Shown here: one piece after another, positions 1-50,100 of the stretch
How positions within the stretch are numbered: the first letter of the stretch is position 1
Layout: each line of letters begins with the position of its first letter
The notes under the pieces: generated by a model
What the model was told of the DNA's origin: nothing
The model's input: the letters and a program-made list of their open reading frames with translations, nothing else
The model's database searches: none
Assembly (NCBI GenBank): GCA_965235115.1
Contig: OZ249451.1
Coordinates: 1,798,001-1,862,000, forward strand
Origin: Laetmonice hystrix
Lineage: Eukaryota
Direction of reading: 5' to 3'
DNA: 64,000 nucleotides
Translations under genes and position numbers: made by a program

Positions 1-3000
1 GCCAACCAGGAAGCCCGGGAGGAAGAGGTGAAGCAGGACCAAGAGGCGAAGCAGGACCACGTGGAGAGGCTGGCAGTCCAGGTGGAGCTGGGCCTGCAGG
101 ACCCGCTGGATCACCAGGCCAGCGTGGTGAGGCAGGACCTCAAGGAGCCCCAGGAAGTGCAGGGCAACCAGGCTCACAGGGACCGAGAGGAGAGTCAGGC
201 CCTGCTGGACCTGGAGGTGCGAGAGGTGAACCAGGCCAGAGAGGAGAAGCAGGGACACCTGGATCTGCAGGTCGACCTGGAGAGAGAGGACAGGCTGGAT
301 CACCTGGACCTGCAGGACAGGCTGGTTCACCCGGAACCCGAGGAGAGGCAGGCCCACGAGGTGAGCAAGGACCACGTGGGGAGGCAGGAACACCTGGATC
401 CCAAGGAACGCCTGGCCAAAGGGGAGAGGCAGGACCTGCAGGACAATCTGGTCCTGCAGGACCATCTGGCGCTCCTGGGCCAAGGGGAGAAGCAGGTGCT
501 CCTGGAGCACCTGGCCGTGGAGAACAAGGTCCACGTGGAGAAGCTGGAACACCTGGTACTCCAGGTAGACAGGGCGAAAGAGGAGCCGCCGGACCTGCTG
601 GTCCATCAGGACCACAAGGACCACAAGGTGGACGTGGTGAACCTGGTCAGCGAGGAGAAGCTGGACCAAGGGGAGAAGCAGGATCACCTGGTGGTGCTGG
701 TAAGTTGAAATGAATATTCTCCACGCTTTTTATGATTTTCTTTACTCGTAATTCGATTAAAATAAACGATACTTCTAAATTCTGTATAATTTTTTTATTT
801 TATTTATGACCACCATTTCTTGATGAAAAGTCATATAAATAATGTGGCATGAATGTGTAGGTCCGGCCGGCCCTCAGGGTCCACAAGGACAACGAGGAAC
901 ACCGGGCACTGACGGACAGCCAGGCTCAGATGGTCAGCCAGGATCACCTGGCGCACGAGGTGAACCTGGTGCAGCTGGAACACCAGGCGCCCGTGGAGAG
1001 CCAGGTCAGCGCGGCGAAGCAGGAACTCCAGGACAGGCTGGAAGGCCAGGAGAACGAGGAGAAGCTGGTCCACAGGGTGCAGCTGGTTCAGCAGGCCCAT
1101 CTGGCCCTGCCGGATCCCCTGGACAACGGGGTGAAGCTGGACCACGCGGAGAGCCCGGATCAGCTGGTGCACCTGGTAAGATTTGGAAAATTAACAGTTC
1201 ATGTCTTAGCTGAAAATAATTTAGGGACTCGATTGGTTCTGTTCAGACAATACAAGATTTTGTTTTACTGTCGTGAAGCTTATACATTAAACTTTTGACT
1301 GGGGTTTCCTGTTTCTTGTTTAATGTAAATAATTTTGTGAATGTGTTTCATTTTCAGGTCGCGATGGTCAGCCTGGAGCTGCTGGCCCACGTGGTGAGCC
1401 AGGAACAGATGGACAAGCAGGAAGTAGAGGAGAAGCAGGACCACGAGGTGAGGCAGGACCACAAGGGTCTCCTGGTCAACGTGGTGAAGCCGGTGCACCT
1501 GGATCACCTGGAAGCCGTGGAGAACCAGGCACTCCTGGATCAGATGGCTCCGCTGGACCAGCTGGACCAGCCGGTACTCGTGGAGAACCCGGACAACGTG
1601 GTGAAGCTGGACAACGTGGTGAACCTGGTGAGGCAGGTCGTCCTGGTACTGATGGCCGTCCGGGTGAGCGTGGCGAGGCTGGGCCTGCAGGTTCAGCTGG
1701 TCCAGCTGGACCCCGTGGAGAGGCTGGCCCAGCTGGAGCGCGAGGAGAGCCTGGTCAAGCAGGCGAAGCTGGATCTCCTGGACGAGATGGTAAGAAGCAG
1801 TCTTGTTTTCAATTTTACTTAATTGGAAGAATCATTATATTTCCTACTGATACGATTAAACCCTTTGCTGATCATAACAAATATTGCTTGAAAAGGATCA
1901 CCTGGAGCGCAAGGCCCCGCAGGACCACGAGGAGAACCTGGACTTGCTGGGCCCGCTGGTGCTGTAGGACCATCTGGACCTCGTGGCGAAGCTGGCACAG
2001 CTGGCAGAGATGGATCACCTGGTCAACGGGGTGAACGCGGTCAACGTGGTGAAGCTGGGCAGCCTGGATCTGCAGGACGACCAGGTGAGAGAGGTGAGGC
2101 TGGACCGGCCGGAGCAGCAGGAGAGCCTGGAAGAGCTGGTTCTCAAGGACCACAAGGAGCACGTGGTGAGCCAGGTCAGCGTGGAGAGGCTGGTGAACGT
2201 GGACAGGCAGGATCACCAGGATCACCAGGTAAGGGCTTCTAATTTGATTATTAACTTTTAGGAATTAAAGAAAATTTCATAGGTATACTTCAATGATTGC
2301 TAATCAATTATTCCTCTTCATAACTCACTTAACATTGCAATTACAGGTACCGCTGGTTCTCCTGGATCTCAGGGAGCCCGAGGTGAAACAGGATCGCAAG
2401 GACCACAGGGAGCACGAGGTGAAGGAGGAGCACGTGGTGAAGCTGGAACTCCAGGATCCCCAGGGCAGCGTGGTGAGCGAGGTGAACCAGGTGCTGCGGG
2501 ATCACCTGGAACAGCTGGCCGACCAGGAGCACGTGGAGAGCAAGGATCTCAAGGACTACAGGGAGAACGTGGCGAAGCTGGAACACCTGGCTCTGATGGC
2601 AGACCAGGAGAGAGAGGTCAACCAGGTGAACCTGGCCGAGCTGGTTCCCCAGGAGCAAGAGGTGAACCAGGCACGGACGGTCGCCCAGGTGAGCGTGGAG
2701 AACAAGGACAACGAGGAGAAGCCGGAGCACCTGGTTCACCTGGAAGGGCTGGAGAACGAGGGCAAGCAGGACCTGCTGGCCCCCAGGGAGCAAGAGGAGA
2801 GGCTGGCCCGCAAGGAGGCAGAGGTGAAGCCGGGCAAGCGGGATCAGCAGGTGAACGTGGCGAACCAGGAACAGATGGTCGACCAGGTACGTCATGGTTG
2901 AAATATTATTATCATTATTGGAGAGAGTGAGATACACGGGCCGATAATGACAGGTCCTGGGATGGGGATGAAACTTAAGGGGATTATCCAGATCTAAACT

Positions 3001-47100: not shown

Positions 47101-50100
47101 ACGGGTGCCTTGTTCTCCAGGTCGGCCTATAGCTCCATCAGTGCCTGGAGCACCACGCGGGCCTGCGGGACCACGTCCACCACGGAGACCTGGTGTGCCA
47201 TCAGCTCCAGGACTACCAGCGGCTCCAGGTTCTCCTGTCTCGCCCCTCTCTCCGGGTCGTCCGTCAGATCCAGGACTTCCCGGAGCGCCAGACTCGCCTG
47301 CTGGACCACGTTGTCCTGCTGGGCCACTGGATCCACGTGATCCTGCTTCTCCAGCAGGTCCACGTTCACCTGGGCGACCTGCAAAGATCAAAGCATTACG
47401 TATATATGTGAATAACATTGGATGTAATTGTCAAATTTCTTTACTACAGGATTCTCTATTAAGATCTCTTTGTATTAAAGTAATTTTAAGAGTTACCGTC
47501 TGATCCAGGGGATCCAGCTCGTCCACGCTCTCCAGGTGATCCCCTTTCTCCACCGGGTCCACGTGCTCCTTGCGAACCTTGTGGTCCAGATGGACCAGCA
47601 GGTCCACGCTCGCCGCGTGCGCCTGGGGCACCAGACTGTCCAGGTTGACCAGACACTCCTCTGCTACCTTGCTCTCCTCGGCTGCCTTGTTCTCCACGCT
47701 GACCGGCCTCACCTGCAGGTCCTGCCGGGCCTGGGGATCCAGCCCTGCCGGGAGATCCACGCTCACCTGCAAGGCCAGGTTGACCTGCAGGGCCTGCGGA
47801 ACCTCTTTCCCCGGCTTGTCCAGCTTGTCCACGTTCTCCAGCCTCACCTCTGGGTCCTTGCGCACCAGGAGAACCTGCACGACCACGCTCTCCTTGAAGT
47901 CCTGAAGACCCTCTTGCTCCTGCCTGTCCTGGTCTTCCATCCTGGCCTCGTTCACCCTGTTCTCCCCGAGGTCCAGCTTCACCAGCTTGTCCTGCTGGAC
48001 CAGCTGGACCTGATGGTCCTGCTCGTCCTGCAGGTCCTCTTTCTCCTCGCGCTCCGGGTTGTCCGTCTGCGCCAGGTCTGCCTGCTTCACCTCGCTCTCC
48101 AGCTGATCCTCTCTCTCCAGCCCGGCCACTCTCTCCTCGGGCTCCTTGTTCTCCAGGTGAACCTCTTGATCCAGGTTGACCACGTGCACCCGCACGGCCT
48201 TGTGATCCGGACTCGCCAGGACGTCCTACTGCTCCAGATGGACCTGTAGGGAGGACACAATGTGTACAGTTGTATCCCTATCTCACATCATACTTTGTTA
48301 TGTTATGAAGAACTAAGAAAATGACACTTCAAAAATCATATTTACCTCTTTCTCCATCCTGGCCTCTTTCTCCTTGAGGACCTCGTTCTCCTGCTCCTCC
48401 TGCAGCGCCACGTTCACCTTGGCGACCAATCTGTCCAGCAGGTCCAGCAGGTCCTGCTGGTCCAGCTTCACCAGGTGCGCCAGGTTCACCAGACCTTCCA
48501 GCTTCTCCTGGTTCTCCTCGGGTTCCAATGCCTGCTTCTCCCTGTGGTCCACGTTGTCCTGGTTCTCCACGTTGGCCAGCAGGTCCTGCAGGTCCAATCG
48601 GGCCGGCGGGTCCTGCAGGTCCTCGCTCTCCTGGACGACCAGCTTCGCCAGCGCGACCACCCTCTCCAGGTTCTCCTCTTGCACCTTGTTCACCTCGTTG
48701 ACCAGGCTCTCCGGGACGCCCTGCTTCACCAGTTGGACCAGGGCGTCCAGCTTCACCTCTTTCACCGGCTTGGCCATCTGCGCCAGGTCTTCCAGACTCT
48801 CCTCGTTCACCGGCGGAACCACGTTCACCTGCTGGTCCGGCCGGTCCACGCTCACCTTGCTCACCACGCTGACCTGGCCGCCCTGACTCTCCACGGCTGC
48901 CAGCTCGTCCGGTCTCGCCTCGTTCCCCAGCTCGTCCACTCTCACCTGCAGGTCCTCTCTCACCGTCCCGACCACGTTCCCCTTGAGGTCCGCGTTCTCC
49001 TTGTTCACCTCGTTGACCTTGTTCCCCATCAGATCCTCTTGATCCAGCCCTGCCCGGGCTGCCATCACGTCCCCGTTCGCCTTGCTCACCCGGTCTGCCG
49101 GCAGCTCCTGGAGTACCTCGCTGTCCAGCCTCTCCACGCTGTCCAGCCTCTCCTTGTGAGCCTTGCTCGCCTTGTTCTCCAGTAGGACCAGCCGGTCCTT
49201 GGGGTCCAGGTCGACCAGCCTCACCGGTCTCACCTCTGGCTCCAGCTTCACCAGGGCGGCCAGCTTCACCAGGACGGCCTGCTTCTCCAGCCTGACCTCG
49301 CTCTCCAGCTTCCCCAGGTCTACCATCGCTTCCACGCTCTCCAGCAGCACCAGTTGGGCCGGCTGATCCTCGTGGTCCTAAATATAAAAAATACATTAAA
49401 CTACAGTCGAAGACAAAGGTAAAGTTAACGAGATGTCGACAACTGAGGCCATTTTCCTGACAACAACTGAACATTTATAATCATGTATTTATGACTTAAT
49501 TTGTACGTAGAAAAGGAAGAAAAAGTATGAGGATAAACGTTAATAATGAAATGAAGCAGACCTTGAGAGCCGGCCTGTCCTGCCCTGCCGGCTTGTCCTC
49601 GCGCTCCAGCCTCGCCTCTTTGGCCAGCAGGGCCATCTGGTCCCCGTGGTCCAGCCGGACCAGCTTCCCCAGCCTCTCCTGCCTCTCCAGGTCGGCCATC
49701 AGCACCTGGTGTTCCTCTTGCACCAGCCTCTCCACGTGCTCCTTGTTCTCCAGCAGATCCTCGCTCACCCTGGCTACCGGCAGGTCCTACAGCACCACGT
49801 GACCCAGCACGACCTACAACAACATGCGTTAGTTTAGACCACGGTCTGGGATTTAACATCACGATGTTAACTTCTGCTCATCGCCAGTATCTATACCGGT
49901 TAGGTGGATCCAGGGATGTCAGTCTTGTGTTATGCGTTCAACATTATCTTTAATCTGCATATTGATGCTCAATACCTTCACAGATAAATATACAATGTAT
50001 ATACAGGTAGTTGGTAGTTGTAGTTGTATTGTAATGACATGTGCATGAGTTGATGTAGCTGTACCTGGTGAACCACGTTCTCCTGCTTCTCCACGCCGAC

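Follow-up and report, generated by a model that had tools for sequence, protein, structure and literature searches.

In fibrillar collagens, paralogous alpha chains are as a rule matched in length. The way in which three very long and repetitive chains come into register and stay there is an unresolved question of collagen folding, with relevance to collagen diseases and to the design of collagen materials. The biochemistry and electron microscopy of annelid cuticle collagen are reportedly treated by Gaill et al. in 1991 and 1995 and by Kimura and Tanzer in 1977. Worm cuticle collagen has been measured at up to 2.4 micrometres (Gaill 1991, as quoted in PMC2443231), and PMC12403961 gives lengths of 8,413-8,859 residues for collagens of alvinellids and of an earthworm. 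Here we describe two collagen genes, A and B, in a stretch of 64,000 nucleotides (nt) from Laetmonice hystrix (assembly GCA_965235115.1, contig OZ249451.1, positions 1,798,001 to 1,862,000; hereafter the window). Their triple-helix regions match in length essentially residue for residue and carry mirrored arginine (Arg) and glutamate (Glu) residues at the same triplets, and A and B are very probably the two alpha chains of one giant worm cuticle collagen.

The locus resembles annelid cuticle collagen in its very long single helix (8,649 x 0.286 nm = 2.47 micrometres computed, compared with up to 2.4 micrometres measured, again as quoted in PMC2443231), in its globular end, here formed by VWA domains, and in a protein length of the same order. 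A second parallel is offered by the vertebrate fibrillar alpha1 and alpha2 chains (type I and its relatives), which are likewise paralogous, assemble as (alpha1)2 alpha2, and have kept the length of the main helix since an ancient duplication. However, the present helix of 8,649 residues is about 8.5 times longer than their ~1,014 residues, is followed by a C-terminal membrane anchor with no C-propeptide (COLFI), and is encoded by long exons with phase 1 introns inside the glycine (Gly) codon, whereas fibrillar collagen genes use phase-0 exons of 54 base pairs (bp). Neither helix holds a single lysine in its ~8,650 residues, the basic residues being all Arg (788 in A, 976 in B), and lysine-derived cross-links would therefore be absent, unlike in fibrillar collagens. 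Length-matched alpha chains are already known; what is new is the scale, together with a register code that can be read from the sequence.

Two further systems share individual features with A and B. In designed heterotrimers (Hartgerink, Wennemers and others), composition and strand order are set by placing Arg or Lys at Y opposite Glu or Asp at X of the next strand, and misalignment loses charge pairs; the present case differs in being natural, in extending over several hundred repeats and 8,650 residues, and in using Arg-Glu pairs only, most of them lateral. Charge pairs or salt bridges have already been proposed as a collagen folding code (PMC11923368). The membrane collagens XIII, XVII, XXIII and XXV (MACITs, PMC4678570) also have a helix tethered by one transmembrane helix beside a short neck, but those are type II proteins with an N-end anchor and interrupted helices, whereas A and B have an N-end signal peptide and a C-end anchor, and the N-terminal cytoplasmic domain plus signal-anchor characteristic of MACITs and type XVII is found in neither. 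In the accessible literature we found no description of a giant worm collagen gene pair or of an exact length match over 8,650 residues, nor of a mirrored Arg/Glu code with co-variation, a C-terminal membrane anchor, or total lysine absence. A preliminary description of the window had mentioned a two-subunit composition for annelid cuticle collagen; no statement on an A/B subunit composition of Nereis cuticle collagen was found in the accessible literature. When a 386-residue exon was compared with representative proteins, the best 150 matches were collagen-like proteins from bacteria, viruses, and vertebrates, none longer than 4,756 residues, with no orthologue among these.

The analysed stretch was extended by 40 kilobases (kb) of flanking DNA on each side to complete both genes. 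Exons were defined using splice dinucleotides and unbroken Gly-X-Y continuity only, and were built independently of the preliminary description. Within the window, Gly-X-Y runs extend from base 9 to 18170 on the plus strand and from 27152 to 63949 on the minus strand, and correspond to two collagen genes, A (plus) and B (minus), which lie tail to tail and both continue beyond the window edges. Each run opens on the G of an AG and reaches 8 nt into a GTAAG-like donor, from which it follows that nearly all introns are phase 1 and split a Gly codon. All splice sites of A and B are AG/GT apart from a single GC-AG intron in B. Coordinates below are those of the window.

1..18177, plus strand: triple-helix exons of gene A (chain A) in the window, 27 exons, 13,719 coding nt.
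-16795, plus strand, outside the window in flanking DNA: start of the gene A helix.
..-699, 861-1175, 1358-1789, 1896-2228, 2347-2886, 3124-4023, 4138-4542, plus strand: gene A exons, first part, from Gly-X-Y and splice sites.
4726-5193, 5431-6015, 6140-6742, 6860-7318, 7579-8298, 8513-8889, 9115-9331, plus strand: gene A exons, second part, on the same basis.
9521-10573, 10692-11465, 11609-12058, 12190-12583, 12716-13032, 13162-13773, 13875-14477, plus strand: gene A exons, third part, on the same basis.
14720-15259, 15497-16657, 16758-16973, 17112-17327, 17718-17861, 17992-18177, plus strand: gene A exons, fourth part, on the same basis.
861..18177, plus strand: block of gene A treated in the preliminary description, 26 exons, 13,020 nt, no stop codon.
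26696..64000, minus strand: triple-helix exons of gene B (chain B) in the window, 57 exons, 21,735 coding nt.
63724-63948 (5' side) down to 26696-26746 (helix end), minus strand: span of the gene B exons in the window.
70175, minus strand, outside the window in flanking DNA: start of the gene B helix.
26696..48243, minus strand: block of gene B treated in the preliminary description, 34 exons, 13,020 nt, no stop codon.
31433..31434, minus strand: GC donor (AG/GC) of the sole GC-AG intron of gene B inside the window, its junction joined in a spliced contig.

The equality of 13,020 coding nt in the two genes, reported in the preliminary description, was reproduced by the independent exon models, as were all of its exon sizes, and every block sum is equal between A and B with no net indel. 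Its count of 22 of 27 gene A introns at the same coding position in B likewise holds, comprising 25 internal introns (20 common, 5 found in A only) and two bounding introns, both common. The extent of the feature had been underestimated: the match inside the blocks first considered is real, but these span just half of the feature, and the match runs along the whole helix. Taking window and flanks together, the helix of A comprises 25,947 nt, 8,649 residues, and 58 exons, and that of B 25,950 nt, 8,650 residues, and 68 exons, and the sole net difference in length is an additional B residue close to the N end. Over this length 43 intron positions are common to A and B (44 if a one-residue offset is allowed), and all blocks between common introns are equal in length. 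One A exon donor outside the window is ambiguous (-17 or -8); -17 was adopted, a choice supported by the fact that charge complementarity between the chains (see below) still peaks at shift 0 upstream of this donor.

Interruptions of the helix are also placed alike. Four occur at matching residues in A and B, at 5,967, 5,452, 4,399, and 3,461 residues from the helix end, and A alone has two additional Gly->Ser breaks; in both 13,020-nt blocks, Gly is found at every third residue apart from one Gly->Ala at the matching residue, which is residue 879 of the gene A block. The coordinates of two matching pairs are as follows.

4254..4256, plus strand: chain A, Gly->Ala break at 3,461 residues from the helix end.
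43916..43918, minus strand: Gly->Ala break in chain B at the matching residue, 3,461 residues from the helix end.
513..518, plus strand: chain A, Gly-X unit of two residues (interruption of the form Gly-X-Gly-X-Y) at 4,399 residues from the helix end.
48527..48532, minus strand: Gly-X unit in chain B matching that of chain A, 4,399 residues from the helix end.

The few introns that are not phase 1 lie at 12583/12716 (394+317) and 8889/9115 (377+217) in A, and at 42352/42079 and 39232/39114 in B (exon pairs 187+1001 and 242+352). In each gene, one such pair is located near but not at the intron of the other gene (coding positions 3995 versus 4039 and 6883 versus 7018 from the helix end).

As observed in the preliminary description, residues at aligned X and Y positions mostly differ: gapless X/Y identity is 23% (0.232 at shift 0), compared with 17 +/- 2% for arbitrary shifts (baseline 0.169). 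Plain identity alone is no guide to register, given that displacement by one triplet in either direction scores as high as shift 0 (0.257 at -1 and 0.241 at +1). Identity at shift 0 sinks to baseline in the last 2,000 residues; this dip does not reflect hidden indels, because the blocks between common introns are equal, and it is accounted for by a mirrored charge motif.

Chain A contains about 520 Arg-Gly-Glu motifs, each made up of Arg at Y of triplet n and Glu at X of triplet n+1 (enrichment 3.3-fold, z 16.8; the same motif is enriched 1.2-fold in B), and at these triplets chain B is arranged in mirror image, with Glu at X of n and Arg at Y of n+1. Arg at Y(n) of A coincides with Glu at X(n) of B 2.6-fold more often than expected, and Arg at Y(n) of B with Glu at X(n) of A 2.7-fold. 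The preliminary description had suggested a test of Arg/Glu complementarity between chains, and the outcome is clear: using large relative shifts of the two chains as the null, Arg at Y of A faces Glu or Asp at X of B in the same triplet in 447 pairs versus 141 +/- 23 (z 13.3), and the reverse arrangement, Arg at Y of B with Glu or Asp at X of A, is found in 422 pairs versus 129 +/- 23 (z 12.7). The maximum falls at shift 0 in 15 of 15 consecutive helix segments, which also validates two ambiguous donor choices outside the window. Opposite an Arg-Gly-Glu motif of A, Glu stands at X(n) of B in 68% of cases, compared with 15% elsewhere, and Arg stands at Y(n+1) of B in 64%, compared with 14% elsewhere. 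The two charges occur together in 38%, compared with 1% elsewhere, giving 196 complete six-charge clusters. Coincidence of like charges at shift 0 is about chance (Arg-Arg z 1.8, Glu-Glu z 2.7), and common descent of the same residues therefore cannot explain the pattern. Furthermore, Arg-Arg coincidence peaks at +1 and Glu-Glu at -1, and since these directions are opposed, no single shift represents a 'true' homology. In both helices, acidic residues are almost exclusively Glu at X and almost exclusively Asp at Y.

A second species provided an independent comparison. Querying with the A tail exon identified nine orthologues and with the B tail exon one, and European Nucleotide Archive (ENA) contig ERZ25767047, from a species more distant than the closest relative (orthologues P0151 and P0160), was walked to 86 kb starting from the A-tail orthologue P0155. 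Its genes, A2 and B2, are also arranged tail to tail, ~9 kb apart, and their exons were called using a splice picker blind to the first species (genes A1 and B1). The preliminary description had asked whether orthologues in related species keep A and B equal in length. Along 20,007 nt in A2 and 16,986 nt in B2, exon lengths are the same as in the first species, apart from two missing introns (612 = 360+252 in A2 and 144 = 99+45 in B2); introns are gained or lost with no change in coding length. All four genes share the interruptions at 4,399 and 3,461 residues from the helix end. A2 carries an additional Gly->Ala 2,117 residues from that end, and B2 has Gly at 5,452, where A1, B1, and A2 have a break.

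Sequence itself has diverged considerably (X/Y identity of 0.53 for A1-A2, 0.39 for B1-B2, and 0.22-0.24 for A-B), and the complementarity has been kept. Over 1,885 common triplets, the second species shows 289 and 281 charge pairs at shift 0, compared with 30-135 at other shifts. If Arg at Y of A is confined to the first species, B is acidic in 61% of cases in that species and 13% in the second; if it is confined to the second species, the values are 13% in the first and 53% in the second. Tables of discordant positions show this co-variation for A Arg with B acid (26/0/1/13, Fisher p 1.2e-9), for the reverse pair of B Arg with A acid (23/1/1/9, Fisher p 1.8e-6), and for the A-to-A motif (26/0/0/11, p 1.2e-9), whereas partners shifted by 1-3 triplets give no significant association except p 0.02 at one neighbouring shift.

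Possible trimers were scored assuming the standard one-residue stagger, with all eight strand orders considered. Lateral contacts were taken as Y(n)-X(n) for the steps leading to middle strand and middle to trailing strand and as Y(n)-X(n+1) for the return from trailing to leading strand, and axial contacts as those one triplet beyond the lateral ones; this geometry agrees with the two axial and one lateral pair of the homotrimer Arg-Gly-X motif (PMC12086834).

Order A-B-A: 2,058 favourable contacts (1,435 lateral), 26 repulsive.
Order A-A-A: 2,035 favourable, 34 repulsive.
Order B-A-B: 1,814 favourable, 171 repulsive.
Order B-B-B: 1,451 favourable, 299 repulsive.

A trimer of two A chains and one B (A2B) with B as the middle strand would fit the pattern best, because A-B-A alone meets the A-to-B, B-to-A, and A-to-A correlations together. 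The preliminary description had suggested comparing staggered A/B registers with homotrimers; on this crude scale A-B-A lies far above B-B-B, and A-A-A is about equal to A-B-A.

The alternative that keeps a heterotrimer and changes its composition, to AB2 in the order B-A-B or to a mixture of compositions, is improbable. Such an order also satisfies both the A-to-B and the B-to-A interface, but its third interface, B-to-B, has 239 favourable versus 54 repulsive lateral contacts and 168 versus 107 axial contacts, and both the Arg-Gly-Glu enrichment in A (z 16.8) and the co-variation within A call for an A-to-A interface. Alternatively, A and B could form separate A3 and B3 homotrimers that lie side by side without stagger in one fibril, the equal length and the facing charges then reflecting contacts between molecules. 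This agrees with the well-paired homotrimer that A alone would give (2,035 favourable contacts) and with the general knowledge that worm cuticle fibrils consist of long parallel molecules. We nevertheless consider it quite improbable, since the coupling is precise to a single triplet and to the position within it (Y of one chain with X of the other) and occurs at shift 0 only, which corresponds to the geometry of neighbouring strands, whereas contacts between helices should blur over several triplets; a B3 trimer, moreover, would have few favourable and 299 repulsive contacts, and B lacks the Arg-Gly-Glu motif used by homotrimers (enrichment 1.2 versus 3.3 in A).

The lengths could finally be equal for a trivial reason, recent duplication or conversion between neighbours, as the adjacency of A and B and their mostly common intron positions might suggest, but this can be practically dismissed given synonymous sites at chance identity, an A-B X/Y identity of just 23-26%, and the same A/B split in the second species, where A is 53% and B 39% identical to its counterpart at X/Y. 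High synonymous identity had been named in the preliminary description as the observation that would favour such an origin. Across 2,881 aligned Gly codons, third positions agree at 0.3877 compared with 0.3882 expected (permutation standard deviation 0.007), and at four-fold sites of identical Pro, Ala, Thr, and Val the agreement between A and B is 0.326 versus 0.327 expected. Synonymous sites at chance indicate that the duplication is old and free of gene conversion, and that equal length is not its by-product; equal length as a trivial outcome is thus ruled out by the saturation of these sites.

The interpretation of A and B as alpha1/alpha2-like chains of one heterotrimer, as the preliminary description had proposed, is supported by the saturated synonymous sites, the charge pairs at zero shift, and the length conservation and co-variation in the second species. 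Several points weigh against it or narrow it. By simple pair count A-A-A scores about as well as A-B-A, and A could also homotrimerise. The pairs at the A-B interface are lateral, and in model peptides lateral pairs are usually weaker than axial ones. Co-expression (see below) is seen at the level of one library, in which cells are not resolved, and the second species spans 65-77% of the helix (about two thirds for B and three quarters for A). The labels 'annelid' and 'cuticle' rest on length, domain make-up, and literature, and the physical assembly of A with B, the 2:1 ratio, the A-B-A order, and the cuticle location are deduced from sequence.

Outside the helix, the two chains have a similar predicted architecture. 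Upstream, both genes encode a signal peptide, which precedes two VWA domains in A and a single one in B, with matches to VWA (PF00092) at E values of 9e-17 and 2e-16 in A and 8e-8 in B. Downstream, the last exons encode a hydrophobic stretch followed by basic residues. The 5' boundary of the last B exon, at 26143, is fixed by a transcript joint, and the B tail is 35% identical to the A tail.

L003:466-1098 and L003:2133-2873: VWA domains of gene A (PF00092).
L005:6796-7566: VWA domain of gene B (PF00092).
18759..19345, plus strand: last exon of gene A by translation, encoding a short neck, a predicted transmembrane helix, and a cytoplasmic tail ending in -SFL, with stop codon.
25791..26143, minus strand: last exon of gene B by translation, encoding a neck, a predicted transmembrane helix, and a shorter cytoplasmic tail.

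A Pfam scan of the last exons of A and B matched no family, and no C-propeptide (COLFI) was found in them. This type of C-terminal exon has two copies in the genome, those of A and B only. The A-type hydrophobic stretch and tail are conserved in the nine orthologues, as are the tail motifs SDAESG, SSVVD, LDSELN, and FRHAxFKGL.

Transcript support came from run X4, which, like the other runs, is not catalogued as RNA; it derives from the same sample as the DNA runs and was found to be spliced once mapped to gene B, where it covers exons alone, joined at GT..AG borders. Contigs from X4 confirm every B junction between 26143 and 31435, including the small exons of 51, 135, 45, 99, and 126 nt and the GC donor, and a spliced contig of 20,250 nt joins 31317/8 to 31434/5 across the GC-AG intron. 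Word content is consistent with splicing of both genes, the fraction present in X4 being 0.46 for a B stretch (exon share 0.52) and 0.65 for an A stretch (exon share 0.69); both genes are therefore transcribed in that sample. The read check covered the 3' end of B, and the splice junctions of A are based on the sequence itself and on their retention in the second species.

Several tandem repeats occupy non-coding parts of the locus. A 33-bp unit repeated 29 times (32465-33424) occupies one intron of B and accounts for a local reversal of GC skew, a 31-bp unit repeated 8 times (26286-26539) lies within the last intron of B, and an array of 34 bp x 9 (23112-23509) lies in the intergenic spacer between A and B. 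Outside the window, at coordinates ~73200-76900 (L005/L006, minus strand), a long tandem array with open reading frames repeating 'SCTLLSGVEVDLSVLYSV...' occupies the B intron between the signal-peptide exon and the VWA exon.

Taken together, each chain is predicted to consist of a signal peptide, one or two VWA domains, a continuous Gly-X-Y helix of ~8,650 residues, a neck, a C-terminal anchor, and a cytoplasmic tail. A and B would wind into the same triple helix, with residue-for-residue register encoded in their charges; with a one-residue stagger, all three interfaces would form Arg-Glu pairs only if A leads, B is in the middle, and A trails. Both lengths may have been held fixed since the ancient duplication because gain or loss of one triplet would misalign every charge pair on one side. 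That repetitive genes would normally be free to add or drop triplets, as the preliminary description assumed, is plausible. Folding would probably proceed from the membrane-anchored C end. We tentatively propose, as a serious though unsettled possibility, that this is a natural collagen whose composition and strand order can be read from its sequence, and in which several hundred mirrored Arg/Glu clusters act as a register check. With this check the helix, at 2.5 micrometres the longest known, could close up without losing its alignment, beginning at a nucleus that the C-terminal anchors keep at the membrane.

For the question of how long repetitive chains find and keep their register, a solution would then be visible in the sequence of a helix more than 8 times the length of type I, in the form of an exact length match, mirrored Arg/Glu residues, and compensating changes between species. 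The pair supplies natural sequences for the design of register-specific heterotrimers. It would also settle an old doubt raised in PMC2443231, namely whether each of the 2.4-micrometre objects observed in the electron microscope is one molecule. If true, the proposal predicts a 2:1 ratio of A to B chains, B as the middle strand, and a severe effect of any insertion or deletion of one triplet.

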